Source: Epiperipatus broadwayi
Lineage: Eukaryota > Animalia > Onychophora
Assembly (NCBI GenBank): GCA_028023455.1
Contig: JAQFVV010000002.1
Coordinates: 10,106,001-10,170,000, forward strand
Length of the DNA stretch: 64,000 nucleotides
Direction of reading: 5' to 3'
A model generated the notes under the pieces. That model did no database searches. It saw only the letters and a list, made by a program, of their open reading frames with translations, and was not told the DNA's origin. The position numbers and the translations under genes were made by a program. This document shows, in pieces, positions 8,065-51,900 of the stretch (the first letter of the stretch is position 1; each line of letters begins with the position of its first letter).

Positions 8065-8918
8065 TTCAAAACTCTCTAAGCCAGAGTAATCAATGGATCC
8101 CAGAAGGCTTGCACATAAAATCCCCATCTAGTGCCTACTCATCCAATATCCCCAGCCTAGTTTCTGGCTTGTGGCCTTCATTAGTGAGGAGCCTTAGATC
8201 TGAGAGCACTGCACCTAGATCTTAGGATCTAATGCAACCCTCCAGCAGCCACCTTTTATCTCTACTTAACTACAAAACCATGAGTCTTACCTTGAAAACA
8301 CTAATATTTTCAATCCAAACTCATTATTATATAGTCATTAGGTCTGAACTCAGTTCAGTACCTTACTCTGGCTTTCACTGAGTGGCAATACGTATAGAGA
8401 GTTTTGCCTGTTTTAATAACAGTTATAAGCAAGCATAGAAAATGGTGATCATGTGATGTTTATTGGGTTAAAATTAATTTTGCCTAATAGGATAGTGATG
8501 GTTATGGTTATTAAAGAACCAGCCACCAAAATGTATAGTACTGAACTGAGTTCAGACCTATATGATTATATAAGCTAATGAGCTTGGATTGAAAATATTA
8601 CAGTGTTTTCAATTTGACTCATGGTTTTGTAGTTAAGTAGAGATAAAAGGTGGCTGCTAGAGAGTTGCATTAGATCCTAGGATCTAAGTGCAGTGCTCTT
8701 TGATCCAAAGTTCCTCACTGATGAAGGCCACAAGCCAGAAACTAGTCTGGGAATATTGGATGAGTAGGCACTAGATGGGGATTTTATGCACAAGCCTTCT
8801 GGCATCCATTGATTATTCTGGCTTGCACTGAGTGGCAATATCTATAGAGAGTTTTGCCTGTTTTGATAACAGTTACAAATAAGCATAGAAAAGGATGATC
8901 ATGTGATGTTTTTTGGCT
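8065..8918 (+). mobile_element. Composite insertion of a ~370-bp hammerhead-bearing dispersed repeat (family H): inverted copy + 3' fragment + sense copy
   Basis: ~8079-8360 is the reverse complement of ~8537-8825. The same 3' block (CTGGCTT.CACTGAGTGGCAATA...GATCATGTGATGTT) occurs at ~8368-8470 and ~8818-8918. A 12-bp direct repeat TAAAAGTAAACA lies at 8053-8064 and 8919-8930. Confidence 0.8.
8714..8751 (+). ncRNA. Minimal type I hammerhead ribozyme motif (family H), predicted cleavage after GUC 8747
   Basis: CTCA-CTGATGA-A-GGC(CACAA)GCC-A-GAAACTAGTC-TGGG: intact CUGANGA and GAAA cores, palindromic stem III ACTAGT, GUC triplet, stem I CTCA/TGGG. Confidence 0.75.
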
Positions 8919-46139: not shown

Positions 46140-48473
46140 AATACTACAATAGTGAGTTGCTAGTTACTCATGCTGTTTTGGACAGAGAACATAACATATT
46201 TAAAAACATTTAAAACTTTGTACATAATTTAAAAATATGTAAAAATATTTTATACAAAAAATATTTAATAAAAATGGCAAAGAGGATTTTTATGCCATTA
46301 AATGAAAAGAACAAAGGTATATTGTTAATGAGATGAATTCGTTCTCATATGTAGTTACACATGTAGATGTTAATAATAAGCTTCAATGGTGTTAAATATA
46401 TGACTAATTCTTCGGTTATTTATTATTCAAACAAATATATTTATAGTTCAGTTAACAAAGATGAGTCAACGGGATATAATCCATTAAAATAAAGGCTATA
46501 GCATAGACAAGTAATATTAATGCATAATTAACAACACGATTAGAATTGACTATCAATTCATAAGTATTGATAAATAATAGATATTATGAAGTCTTGATAC
46601 GAGTTTGTTGTAGAAGAAATCATTTAATGTGATATCTCAGATTACATATACAAAATGCAAATTAGTTATAATATATACATATTACATATAAATAATATAT
46701 CATTATTGAAGTCATATGTATTATATGCTAAGTTTATTTTAAATTATGTAGCATTGTTTTTAAACATTTATTTAAGTTTGCTAAAATTAGCCGTTTAAAC
46801 AATTAATAAACCACAGAACTCACCTTGTTAAACAATCTAATTGATGTGATAACCAAATAGATAGAAATTCTTTGAGATAGACATTAAGACAATTTTTTAA
46901 TAATTATTATTGTGAGTATATAAAGAAAGCTGCAGAGATTAATGAATATGATATAAATAATAATGGAAGAACAGTTACAATGGGCTCAGTAATGGTATTA
47001 ATAATGAAATGTTATTATGAGTATAAACTATTGTCTTAAATAAATGTATTTACATAGATTGTAAAAAGGCATATTTTAAATGTATAAAGACATTTAAAAA
47101 AAATGCAATTTCTATATTGGTTTTTTTTTATTTTTAAAAAATAAACAAAACTTTTATAATTTGTTTATTAGTGCTATGTGATTATTAAGTGTTAAAATTT
47201 AAGAATTAGTTGTATGTGTTCATTGAGATTATCCTACATGTTTGATGTTATAAAATATTTGTTATTGCTGCTTCTCATTTGTTACTATTGTCTTTGCTCC
47301 AGATAATAGATTGCTTTCAAATAAATTTGTTACCTATTTATATATTTAATTTTTATGTTTCATATGTTTTATTTTTGTAGACAGACACAAATGTTGCATG
47401 AAGCTATTTTTCAGGAATATACATGTGCTTAACATGGTTGCAATGAATTTTATTATTTTGAATTTGAGTACATGTTTGTACTATATTAAGTTCATTGCTC
47501 AAAGATAGGTGGAATAACTAGAAAGTAGATTCTGTGACTCATGGATAATACTTAATCATTTTTAGAGATAATTTACTTTTGCTTGCCACTTGTATAGAGC
47601 AATTTATTATTAATAAAACTTTATATCAGTCAAGTGGCAAAATAAATTACATTTTAATTAAATGTCACCAGAAGAAATTGATAACATTAAATAACAGTCA
47701 ATCTCATGTATATTATTAAGACTAACAATACCACATTTCTGTGAAAATAACACCAGATCTTATATTAATTTTTGCTCCAAAAGACACTATAGGGCTTATT
47801 TCCAGGAGATGTCTTATTTTTTATATACAAAAATCTACATTTATTCAAGTCCTTTTTTTCTTTACAGGAACCTGTAAAATTCTTACTCTGGAAGTCATCC
47901 ATAATTTGTTTCTTGTAGTCACCAAAATAGTTTTTTTTTTTGTACTCATCTTATCTGATGATCAGGATATTATTCCATTTAAATTTACCATTAAATCAAG
48001 TGTTAATTGAAGGCTTGCAAGACAGGAGTTGACTATAGTTAAAAGTGATTTGTCCACACAAAAGCAGCAAAAAAATGCAAGCATAAAAATTCAGAAAATA
48101 TTTTTATTTCACACATGCACATTAAATATGTCAATTTATAACAAGCAGCATATTCAATTACAACTACATCCATTATCAAGTGTGTACATTGTAAACAGTT
48201 CCAAATTAGTTGTAATAATCCTACTTGGGTAGTCTTTTAAAAAAAAAATTTAGGAGAAAGATTGATGATTTAACTGTATTTTTATATTGGACTATTTCCA
48301 TCATCTAATATGTGTGTTGAATGTCTTTAGAAAAGTTTAATTTTGAGTTAAATGTTCCAAATGCATTCAACTGTTAGTAATATCACAGCAAACAAATGTT
48401 AATAATATCACAGCAAACAGGTTAGTATATGCACTAACTGTTAGTAATATCACAGCAAACAGGTTAGTATACG

Positions 48474-48516
48474 CACAACGTTTCGAGAGGTATTTTTCTC
48501 CCCTCTTCTTCAGGTG
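48474..48516 (-). ncRNA. Mirror copy of the same hammerhead motif (left arm)
   Basis: Exact reverse complement of 48727-48769. Confidence 0.75.
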
Positions 48517-48618
48517 TTGCTGGCCTGACCAGTGACAGTACTAGCATGGGATTCGAACCTGGGTCCTTAGATTCTTGATTATTGAAATTTAAGGTAACGT
48601 TCTAACCAACTGAGCCAT

Positions 48619-48700
48619 GGCAGGATGGCTCAGTTGGTTAGAGCATTACCTTAAATTTTAATAATCAAGAATCTAAGGACCCAGGTTCGAATCCCATGCT
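48619..48700 (+). promoter_or_regulatory. tRNA-derived Pol III internal promoter (SINE head); mirror copy on the minus strand at ~48543-48618
   Basis: A box TGGCTCAGTTGG (48626-48637) and B box GGTTCGAATCC (48684-48694). The acceptor stem does not pair, so this is not called a tRNA gene. Confidence 0.85.
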
Positions 48701-48726
48701 AGTACTGTCACTGGTCAGGCCAGCAA

Positions 48727-48769
48727 CACCTGAAGAAGAGGGGAGAAAAATACCTCTCGAAACGTTGTG
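48727..48769 (+). ncRNA. Minimal type I hammerhead ribozyme motif in the SINE body (right arm)
   Basis: CAC-CTGAAGA-A-GAGGGG(AGAAAAATA)CCTCTC-GAAACGTT-GTG: intact cores, 6-bp stem II, palindromic ACGT stem III, GUU triplet, 3-bp stem I. Confidence 0.75.
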
Positions 48770-48780
48770 CGTATACTAAC

Positions 48781-48915
48781 CTGTTTGCTGTGATATTACT
48801 AACAGTTAGTGCATATACTAACCTGTTTGCTGTGATATTATTAACATTTGTTTGCTGTGATATTACTAACAGTTGGTGCATATACTAACCTGTTTGCTGT
48901 GATATTACTAACAGT
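48781..48915 (+). repeat. 42-bp / shorter-unit tandem repeat in the SINE body
   Basis: The core TTTGCTGTGATATTA occurs four times in the right arm and three times (inverted) in the left arm at ~48370-48462. Confidence 0.9.
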
Positions 48916-51900
48916 TGAATGCATTTGGAATATTTAACTCAAAATTAAACTTTTCTAAAGACATTCAACACACATATTAGATGATGGAAATAGTCCAATA
49001 TAAAAATACAGCTAGAACACCATCATCACAAACCTTCAGAAAAACATTGATGATTTAACTTAAGATAAACTTTGATTATTAAAATCACTTGTGTTATTTT
49101 AATAAAAAAAGTTAGGGTGAAAAAATGTTTCAGAAATCAAACTATTTTTTTTAAAACTTGAATATTTAAAAGCTGCTATGATGAAAAGATCTAAGTATTA
49201 AATAAAATAAATTCCTAAATGTATATAAATGAAATTATAAATAGTACCTGATATACTTAGTTATAGTAGATAAATTGTTTTTCAATACAAGTAAAATTAT
49301 TTTTGTTGAAAATTGTCAATGGAAAAATACAAAAGAACTACATAATTTCATTATCATTTATTTAAAGCATTAATGTCAATAAAATTGTTTATTTATACTT
49401 TTATTACTTCATAATTTAAAATATGTTCATTGATGTTCTATGTGGCTAGCAATCTTAACTAGGGTTTATATTTAGAGTAGGGTTTAAATTATAAGCATCC
49501 TGAAAAATTATGCTAGGGCTTATTTTTTGGTTAGATCCCTTTTTGGGGGAAACATGGTAGTAAAAAACACACAATTTAAAAATATAAATAGCTCACTATA
49601 TATCAAAAGCTTTTAAAATCCCCTCAAAGAAACCAGTGAAAAAAAAAATTGATGGTGAAGATGTCAGTTAACTCCTAATATAGGGTGAAAACCAGTTCAA
49701 TAAAGAAAATATTTATTATTTTTATATAGTTGTTTTATTTCAATTGTGTTGGAACCATTACTGTAATAATATTATATACAATATTACAAGACAATACATA
49801 TAATATTAATAATAATAGCAATCATGACATAAACTTTTTGTTTCATATTTTTTCTTGTGAAACTAAGAACGAAATCTTCAGTGCAACCATTTAAAATCTG
49901 CAGCATGATATGATTGATAAATACTTTTTTCCATATGAGTACATTTCATATTTATTTATTAGTTTAAACTGTAATTCTAGTATGTTGCTGGATCTATAAA
50001 CAATTATAGTTTTCATCTGATAACTTCAACACTTTGTTATTCTGGAAATTAAAAAAAAGTTGAAGATAAACATTGGTTCTTAACTTCATCATCGTATATG
50101 GATTTCATATACTTTATTGACTAATAGCACTATTTAATAATTGACACATTAGAAATCTGATCCACAATATGATTAATACAGTAATTAATATATCAAAGTT
50201 TAAGTTGACATTTGATTCACTTTTAATGAGATTCTACAACCCAGTTTACTAAACATATCAATTCCACTTGTTACTGGAAGTTACAAGATGGTATATTCAT
50301 TTCTGCCCTAACAAGAGTTTTAAGGCAATGTTTAGACTATCTCATATTAAAAGTCTTAATAAATATTTTATAAACTTATAATTTAGTATCTTCATTTATA
50401 TTGTTTTATTAGGTAGGTATAAGTTATTGCTGTGCTTTTATTTAATTGCAATATAACATTTTTTTAAATTTATTTTCTCCACCTAATAAAATTAATACAA
50501 CATAATAAAATTGTGCCAGTTGGAGTTAACATTAATATAATATCTCACATTAGTTTAAACATATCACAAGAGCCTTATCAATTTCAAAATTGCAATAAAA
50601 GACATTAAGTATCTCCTATATAGTTCTGCTTATTTTTGAATTTATTCTGACTGAAATTACAAAATAATTTTCTTTTTTTTTCTTCTTGTTATCCCAAATA
50701 AATTATAAGTATTTTTATAATGCACACAGTAAATATAATTAAAATATTTATAAAATAAGGAGTAAATTTTCATTCTTATGAACTTCTGAGTTTGTTTAAA
50801 TTTGAAGTCCATTTGGCAGGATTTTTCTTTCAATATGTCTACCAGTTTTAAATGTGAACCTTTTACAATTATAAATTGACAGTAGCAATGTGTTTCATGC
50901 ATGTAGGTCAAATGGAGTTCCTACTCCATTAGTTGCAAGTTAAAATTCAATTCAATTCCATTTTTAATTCAGTTCAAATTCAGTTTTACTTTTTAATAAT
51001 TTTCAGCTTAAATTTTCAGTTTCATTATTTTCAGTTGTTATCATTTCTTCATTTAATTCTTCCTGGTTCTCCTCTATAAAAATCTATGTTGACCTATTTA
51101 TAAACTTTTATCAGAGAGGATGATTGTACAAATTAACAGAGCAATTGAATTATTGTATATGCATACATTAACATACAATTAATAATTCTCTATCTATAAG
51201 CATAAGTGATAACTAATTAAGCTGTTCAAAACTATTTTAAATTGCAATAAAAATATGCTTGAGAATTAATTATAAATATTAATTTAGAATAACTATAATT
51301 TTAAGTCTCCATGACTATTATTTAATAGTAATGAAATACCAAGTATTTCTATACTTTAATTTAATCATAATATTAATAAATTATTCTGATACTATTGAAA
51401 TTATTCTGACAGACTGCATATAAAAAGTCTCATACACAATCTGGCAGAGAGCCTATCACACATCTTGAACAGTTTAATTATTCATCACTCTCAGGAGATT
51501 TATAGATGAAGTTTATTTATTTTCATAATATAATTTAGCAATCATGATAACACACCACTGATATAATATACCTATTTGATATATTTAATTATTGTCAATT
51601 AAAATTTAAAATTTTATATAATTGACCATTTAAATAGGTCTTGACAAACATCAAGTCAACCATAAGGTTACAATATATATATAAATGATACATTTTGTGG
51701 GTTCGTCCATGTATGATTTTAATTATAAACATACTGATGTTTCAGCTTGATCTCATTAAGCCATCAACTGAGTAATGAATAAAATATTATAAAGATACTT
51801 GTAGAGGTACTGAAACACTAATTTATAACAATGCTAAAGTTCCATCAATAGAGGGGAAAAAACAGGTACATAAAATTTAAAAAATAAAATGTCAGAAAAT

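Follow-up and report, generated by a model that had tools for sequence, protein, structure and literature searches.

We find that a ~770-bp palindrome at positions 48276-49045 of a 64,000-nt stretch of the onychophoran Epiperipatus broadwayi genome (assembly GCA_028023455.1, contig JAQFVV010000002.1, positions 10,106,001 to 10,170,000; hereafter the window, at its full length) is very probably a single insertion of a young, very abundant autonomous Penelope-like element (PLE), present as a head-to-head pair of 5'-truncated copies. The right arm of this palindrome had been singled out in an earlier, sequence-only reading as a non-autonomous short interspersed element (SINE), transcribed by RNA polymerase III (Pol III), with a tRNA-derived 'head', a minimal hammerhead ribozyme, a repeat body and a unique 3' end, and dependent on PLE enzymes for its mobility. 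The arm is instead the 3'-terminal 429 nt of the autonomous PLE itself, comprising the whole 3' untranslated region (UTR) and the first 22 codons of the open reading frame (ORF). What had been taken for a unique 3' end is the ATG of that ORF and the codons that follow it, and ~80% of head-bearing copies, in a head-anchored sample described as unbiased, continue upstream into the PLE ORF.

A homology search with the proposed unit over the 5.6-Gb genome returned 844 candidates, from which 40 other places were scored and the 30 best loci fetched. All 40 are 99-100% identical to the unit over its full 427 nt, so that the expectation of dispersed, high-copy relatives was borne out; the accompanying expectation of a shared 5' end at the head was not. 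A sharp 5' end at this point holds for the copy in the window, but in 27/30 of the best copies the same sequence lies directly upstream of the head, homology extends at least 1.5 kb further, and the points of 5' truncation vary from copy to copy. On one contig (C169) two copies are spaced 2,842 nt apart with a tail-to-head junction, and in L011, L013, L015, L020 and L026 the tail is joined straight to the start of the next copy (...GAAAAACA followed immediately by CTAAGTATTC). From this period and these junctions the full element is 2,843 nt long and occurs in tandem.

The element contains a single ORF of ~816 amino acids, with a reverse transcriptase (RT) and, C-terminally, a GIY-YIG endonuclease, whose stop codon lies 30 nt before the head. 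Pfam detects RVT_1 in the ORFs upstream of the unit, and the ORF is 49-50% identical to insect PLE-type ORFs and to a large family of ORFs in animals with PF00078, PF26215 and PF28514. A GIY-YIG motif is visible at the ORF C-terminus, which aligns at E=4e-22 to a relative (P0092) whose aligned part is PF01541 above cut-off. The other end of the ORF is found at the other end of the element: an ATG at 48981, 63 nt before the element end, opens a peptide (MMEIVQYKNTARTPSSQTFRKT) that reaches the last base, such that the final 66 nt are coding. In tandem copies this frame crosses the tail/head junction, and at L015 it stays open for at least 521 amino acids, into RVT_1, with 50% identity to a Harmonia PLE ORF. 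The unit is thus permuted with respect to its ORF, running from codon 23 to the stop codon, then a 30-nt spacer, the tRNA-derived segment, the minimal hammerhead, the 42/67-nt repeats, and the ATG with the first 22 codons. It follows that the ORF is complete only where copies stand in tandem, an arrangement in which they form a pseudo-long terminal repeat (pseudo-LTR). An RT ORF, GIY-YIG, tandem/pseudo-LTR organization, an inverted truncated partner with a one-sided tail and a hammerhead motif are all found in this family, and the parent element is an endonuclease-positive (EN+) PLE, young and very abundant. The whole PLE is also present in four sequencing-run contig sets (none recorded as RNA), with depth climbing toward its 3' end.

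Self-comparison of the window places two PLE arms head to head, 48263/48276-48618 against 48625-49022, with 96-99% complementarity around a 6-nt centre. The locus is made up as follows, with reference positions given on the full-length element.

48261 to 48275, no strand: left copy of the target-site duplication (TSD), 15 bp, ATTGATGATTTAACT, a direct repeat of 49046-49060
48276 to 48618, minus strand: inverted 5'-truncated PLE arm, spanning reference ~2422-2806
48619 to 49045, plus strand: direct PLE arm, the unit of the earlier reading, spanning reference 2415/2416-2843 and starting at the tRNA-like head
48626 to 48694, plus strand: tRNA-derived segment, a D-arm with A box and a T-loop B box
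48626 to 48637, plus strand: A box TGGCTCAGTTGG, by pattern match
48684 to 48694, plus strand: B box GGTTCGAATCC, by pattern match
48727 to 48769, plus strand: minimal hammerhead, PLE-type, predicted to cleave after U48766
48767 to 48917, plus strand: internal tandem repeats with periods 42, 67 and 25, by repeat detection
48981 to 49046, plus strand: PLE ORF start codon and first 22 codons, MMEIVQYKNTARTPSSQTFRKT, in a frame that is open in tandem copies
49010 to 49045, plus strand: 36-nt PLE 'tail', extending the 3' end of the direct arm only, delimited by the bimodal 3' ends of arms
49046 to 49060, no strand: right copy of the TSD, 15 bp, repeating 48261-48275 and so enclosing the entire pair

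The direct arm carries the complete PLE 3' UTR and the ORF start, is 99.5% identical to the full-length reference, and terminates in ...CAGAAAAACA with no poly(A). Its A and B boxes, minimal hammerhead, 42/67-nt repeats and poly(A)-less 3' end are all where the sequence-only reading had put them. The inverted arm has its own A and B boxes (48549-48617) and its own hammerhead core (48477-48513), has one 42-nt repeat unit fewer, and lacks the 36-nt tail; its 3' end belongs to a class at reference 2805-2814 that is common to other tail-less arms. The internal repeat number differs among family copies, and many older copies are without reference 2605-2672.

The same architecture recurs through the family. 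Where a second copy lies nearby in the fetched loci it is always head to head, in 12/30 of the best loci and likewise in most loci of the other samples, and among the tail matches the members of a close pair are without exception ordered minus strand first, plus strand second. The 3' ends of arms fall into two classes, at reference 2843 or 29-38 nt short of it (2805-2814, including 2807/2811/2814), and the entire pair is enclosed by TSDs of 12-15 bp in the window as well as in L046, L021 and L029. Frequent 5' truncation, partial tandems, an inverted 5'-truncated neighbour and a one-sided tail of 30-40 bp are known features of PLE insertions (Craig et al. 2021, PMC8557442), and a purified PLE protein both cleaves and extends the two target strands and initiates internally (Frangieh et al. 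2024, PMC11167929), with reverse transcription of the Anolis PLE beginning at adjacent internal sites in the 5' part of the ORF (PMC11167929). From the genomic footprints we infer a comparable route for the window copy, in which PLE RT/GIY-YIG would have made the copies and either both cut target ends would prime cDNA synthesis or the cDNA would snap back on itself, leaving head-to-head 5'-truncated copies within one 15-bp TSD and a 36-nt tail on one arm. The link to PLEs proposed from the ribozyme stands, through a dimer-type minimal motif and copies attributable to PLE enzymes.

Among paired arms at loci L004-L029 both arms tend to be truncated at nearby points, mostly 11-180 nt apart. Such near-equal truncation would fit cDNA snap-back or coupled synthesis better than two independent primings.

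Exact-match counts across the genome bear on copy length. A tail-proximal 30-mer has 10,737 exact matches (more than 10,000 arms), against 1,268 for a 28-mer in the head, so that truncation mostly falls below the head and a typical copy does not have the length of the 429-nt form. A 43-mer across the ORF-head junction has 474 exact matches, and head copies without it are mostly mutated variants that still carry the upstream sequence. A 17-mer from the D-arm, applied with a 33-position filter, has 6,404 matches, and sequence of this same family follows nearly all of them.

The hammerhead core at 48727-48769 reads CAC-CUGAAGA-A-GAGGG...CUCUC-GAAACGU-U/GUG, with helix I formed by CAC/GUG, CUGAAGA followed by an extra A, helix II formed by GAGGG/CUCUC, and GAAA leading into a helix III that consists of the palindrome ACGU. 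Searched as a pattern, it matches only the two arms of this locus within the window, with 0 matches expected in shuffled sequence. An extra nucleotide following A9, pairing of G10.1 with C11.1 and a palindrome at 15.2-16.2 set PLE hammerheads apart (PMC4209133), and the motif in the window has all three hallmarks. The Rfam hammerhead models that the earlier reading had proposed as a check (Hammerhead_1/3/HH9/HH10/II) gave no match at gathering score over the whole window, nor at E<=10 over 48200-49100; this is expected, because minimal PLE motifs are without a closed helix III (PMC4209133). The only strong Rfam matches at E<=10 over 48200-49100 were to miRNA-hairpin models that fit the palindrome, which we read as spurious.

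Hammerhead variation within the family is mainly CpG decay in neutral copies and hence uninformative, and covariation was therefore sought in related PLEs of other genomes. The set comprised six PLEs, namely the window copy, one from a further assembly, two from metagenome contigs, and those of Oculina and Anthonomus. Downstream of its stop codon each carries CAC-CUGANGA-N-helix II-GAAACGU-H-GUG (G-C-G in Oculina), and the sequence of helix II differs among them while its pairing is kept. Standard pairs occupy 93.3% of cells, as compared to a shuffle mean of 73.5% (0/500 shuffles as high), helix II pairs are altered on both sides in 5/6, and in a control in which partners were slid by 1-3 columns only 31-57% of cells are paired. 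The Anthonomus copy additionally shows a covariation in the core, U3-A8, that is already known. By eye the motif is also present in a Harmonia PLE, which was left out of the count as it was misaligned by MAFFT. Judged by its sequence hallmarks and this covariation, the hammerhead is genuine and is a normal PLE pseudo-LTR ribozyme motif. Ribozyme activity is predicted accordingly from the motif, and since helix III is the palindromic ACGU the hammerhead would be expected to act as a dimer.

A second, unrelated minimal hammerhead is found elsewhere in the window, at 8714-8751 (within 8537-8918), reading CUCA-CUGAUGA-A-GGC...GCC-A-GAAA-CUAGU-C/UGGG. Its helix III palindrome is ACUAGU, and it has an extra A after A9 as in the motif described above; it probably belongs to the pseudo-LTR of another PLE family.

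The tRNA-derived segment is the less conventional part of the element. Within the window only the two arms carry the combined A/B-box pattern, for which 100 shuffles give an expectation of 0 matches, and both boxes are perfect and 47 nt apart. No credible tRNA was found at the head by ARAGORN (in standard, intron-allowing and relaxed modes) or by the Rfam tRNA model, which has no match at gathering score anywhere in the window, and the head's fold is not significant (z-score -0.94); the whole unit scores z = -4.5, mostly from pairing between repeats. The head is therefore best described as what it contains, a D-arm and a T-loop, and is not a foldable tRNA. Both boxes are present beyond chance, and their promoter activity is putative. 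Sense-strand T4/T5 runs at +334, +662, +747 and +2387 make Pol III transcription of the whole element implausible. In the right arm of the window there is also a T4 run between the boxes (48656-48659), where the reference copy and the left arm read TTTC, not TTTT.

In the Harmonia PLE, the stretch from stop codon to hammerhead contains A-like and B-like motifs; local alignment of this region to the head is no better than to shuffles, and no homology is claimed. No tRNA-like module was seen in Anthonomus, Oculina or three other PLE relatives. As a separate observation, CCAAT/ATTGG and TATAAG-like motifs occur between the ORF stop and the hammerhead of several relatives (L099 2400-2500, L100 2560-2650, L095 2890-2910 and L094 3810-3825), which is compatible with a Pol II promoter at the position held here by the tRNA-like segment. 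In the 3' UTR of the Harmonia PLE (L093 3787-3857) two tandem stem-loops lie just 5' of the hammerhead; they score 24.3 and 20.3 bits with the model of the histone 3' UTR stem-loop, for which the gathering score is 34, and the resemblance is probably due to chance.

Some observations weigh against the reading of the locus as a PLE insertion. The Pfam scan makes no direct GIY-YIG call on the ORF, the domain being assigned from the visible motif and from homology. More pointedly, when the 5' ends of 136 arms from three samples are binned by 10 nt of the reference, 14 start in bin 2410-2419 as compared to 1-2 in neighbouring bins, and about 12 of the first 63 head-bearing copies (~19%) start at reference 2413-2421, a peak at the head that random truncation does not predict. 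The TSDs of solitary head-start copies put the true start at 2416-2421. In the tail-anchored sample head-start arms are 1/29. There is also a second 5'-end hot spot, at reference 2700-2709 (window 48903-48912), with 7/136 arms including 6/29 of those that are tail-anchored, where the last internal repeat gives way to the unique 3' region; such peaks are thus not unique to the head. On a maximum-likelihood tree of the family, head-start copies are scattered from old to young branches, and 11 changes suffice for the 15 head-start rows, where shuffles average 13.5 and 20/500 of them are as low. This scatter indicates that they form no self-propagating lineage. We regard the hot spot at the head as real, with Pol III initiation, cleavage of the kind performed by ribonuclease P (RNase P) and a barrier to reverse transcription as candidate causes.

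It is tempting to speculate that the tRNA-derived segment is functional and sets a discrete RNA 5' end, whether by Pol III or by RNase P-like cleavage, yielding a mobilisable sub-genomic RNA of ~429 nt with a tRNA-like head, a hammerhead and the RT entry site; we hold this to be doubtful. The Pol III form of the idea, which we consider improbable, is that of a nascent SINE, in which the A and B boxes are a promoter, the RNA starts at the head and is mobilised in trans by the PLE, and the right arm in the window and the other head-start copies would be its products. Solitary full-length head-start copies (L010, L027, L089 and L060), some with TSDs, are what such a process would leave, and the perfect boxes at their 47-nt spacing and the sharp clustering of 5' ends at reference 2413-2421 agree with it, as does an order of promoter then hammerhead like that of Schistosoma Sm-alpha, as that repeat is summarised in PMC6765202. 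Yet the head-start copies are a minority, at ~19% of head-bearing copies and 1/29 tail-anchored arms, and are not a separate lineage on the tree (11 changes against 13.5). Their 5' ends, moreover, lie only 2-8 nt upstream of the A box, and Pol III usually starts ~11-13 nt upstream of it, while the T4 run at +334 precedes the RT start sites (~+392 to +399) and the window copy has a further T4 at +38. As a tRNA-derived SINE in the ordinary sense the unit is rejected, having no shared 5' end at the head, a coding 3' 66 nt and no lineage of its own.

In the other form, the Pol II transcript of the PLE would be processed endonucleolytically at the tRNA-like +1 by RNase P or something similar, and the 3' fragment then reverse-transcribed. 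The 5' ends do correspond to tRNA position +1/-1, seven nt before the A box, and in the minimum-free-energy fold UGGCAG pairs with CUGUCA to close the whole tRNA-like domain; against this, the segment forms no cloverleaf (neither ARAGORN nor the Rfam tRNA model recovers a tRNA, and z is -0.94) and the T stem is just 2-3 base pairs, and we think this quite improbable. A different kind of explanation would make the palindrome a DNA-level structure, either a foldback transposon or miniature inverted-repeat transposable element with long terminal inverted repeats, or an inverted duplication generated by replication. Arms that are 96-99% complementary about a 6-nt spacer and flanked by a direct repeat would suit such an origin, but the arms are asymmetric in the manner of PLE insertions, with a one-sided tail and unequal repeat numbers, elsewhere both arms are truncated at variable points inside the RT ORF, solitary arms are common, and the family has an RT/GIY-YIG ORF and no transposase, all of which makes this extremely unlikely. 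A metazoan non-LTR retrozyme was likewise considered and rejected, because there is no tandem array of a short unit: ~100 fetched loci contain 0 tandems of the 429-nt unit, and the sole tandems among them are of the whole 2.84-kb PLE.

Reading the locus as a PLE insertion places it close to well-described systems. Canonical EN+ PLEs (Penelope/Poseidon, Neptune and Nematis; Cervera & de la Pena 2014, PMC4209133; Craig et al. 2021, PMC8557442) have the same single ORF with RT and C-terminal GIY-YIG, the same tandem/pseudo-LTR layout, the same heavy 5' truncation with an adjacent inverted 5'-truncated copy and a 30-40-bp one-sided tail, and the same minimal type I hammerhead (extra base after A9, G10.1-C11.1, palindromic helix III). 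They differ at the position between stop codon and hammerhead, which is occupied here by the tRNA-derived segment, whereas several of the relatives that we fetched show the CCAAT/TATA-like motifs there; in the open-access text searched, a tRNA-like segment within the pseudo-LTR of a PLE was described by none of the papers found. The unit of PAc, which is a Poseidon PLE from Anolis carolinensis (Frangieh et al. 2024, PMC11167929), likewise ends inside the 5' part of the ORF. In PAc the tail is explained by adjacent internal RT starts, to which the arm 3' ends at 2807/2811/2814 or 2843 may be compared, and both target strands are cleaved and extended, whereas the process here is read from genomic footprints, in another host and element.

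Comparison can also be made with short hammerhead-bearing repeats. SINE-like elements of Schistosoma, Sm-alpha and Sj-alpha, were reportedly characterized by Ferbeyre et al. in 1998 and Laha et al. in 2000. According to the summaries in PMC6765202 and PMC2770079, these share a Pol III-type segment just upstream of a hammerhead, a repeat length of a few hundred nt and the absence of poly(A); on that account (PMC6765202) both head and hammerhead are found together in Sm-alpha/Sj-alpha, and the combination, which the sequence-only reading did not know as a described family, has a precedent. Sm-alpha stands alone as a non-coding and often tandem repeat whose hammerhead is canonical, whereas the module here is built into an autonomous PLE and most copies include ORF sequence. 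Animal retrozymes have been argued to derive from PLE pseudo-LTRs (Li, Clavereau & Pollet 2026, bioRxiv 10.64898/2026.07.22.740005). The metazoan non-LTR retrozymes of that study are similarly non-coding, hammerhead-bearing relatives of PLE pseudo-LTRs that are presumed to rely on PLE enzymes, but they form tandem arrays of a short unit, whereas the 429-nt unit here is the end of a PLE or a truncated or inverted arm.

A repeat library built from this window would wrongly divide one PLE into a "SINE" and a "palindrome". Features that are puzzling in isolation (inverted arms, a one-sided tail, a poly(A)-less 3' end, a hammerhead, an ORF start at the element end) are textbook footprints of PLEs, and a very young family, with copies 99-100% identical and more than 10,000 arms, offers thousands of natural integration products that bear on the in vitro findings that RT initiates internally and that both target strands are extended. 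Modestly new are the tRNA-derived segment that this pseudo-LTR contains and the accumulation of 5' ends there. If an RNA end were set by the segment, PLEs would be tied to the origin of SINE-like repeats that bear hammerheads; we would be looking at an autonomous PLE in the act of producing a SINE-like derivative, and at a model of the way in which hammerhead SINEs of the Sm-alpha type and animal retrozymes could arise from PLE ends.

Two minor observations concern the tRNA-like sequence and the internal repeats. The Rfam tRNA model returned ~713,000 first-look candidates over the whole genome, a rough count, which suggests that very many tRNA-related repeats are present. Every internal repeat unit (48767-48917) contains UACUAAC-like boxes (TATACTAACC, TTACTAACAG) that resemble branch-point plus AG motifs; intron retention is known from PLEs, and a link between the two is putative.

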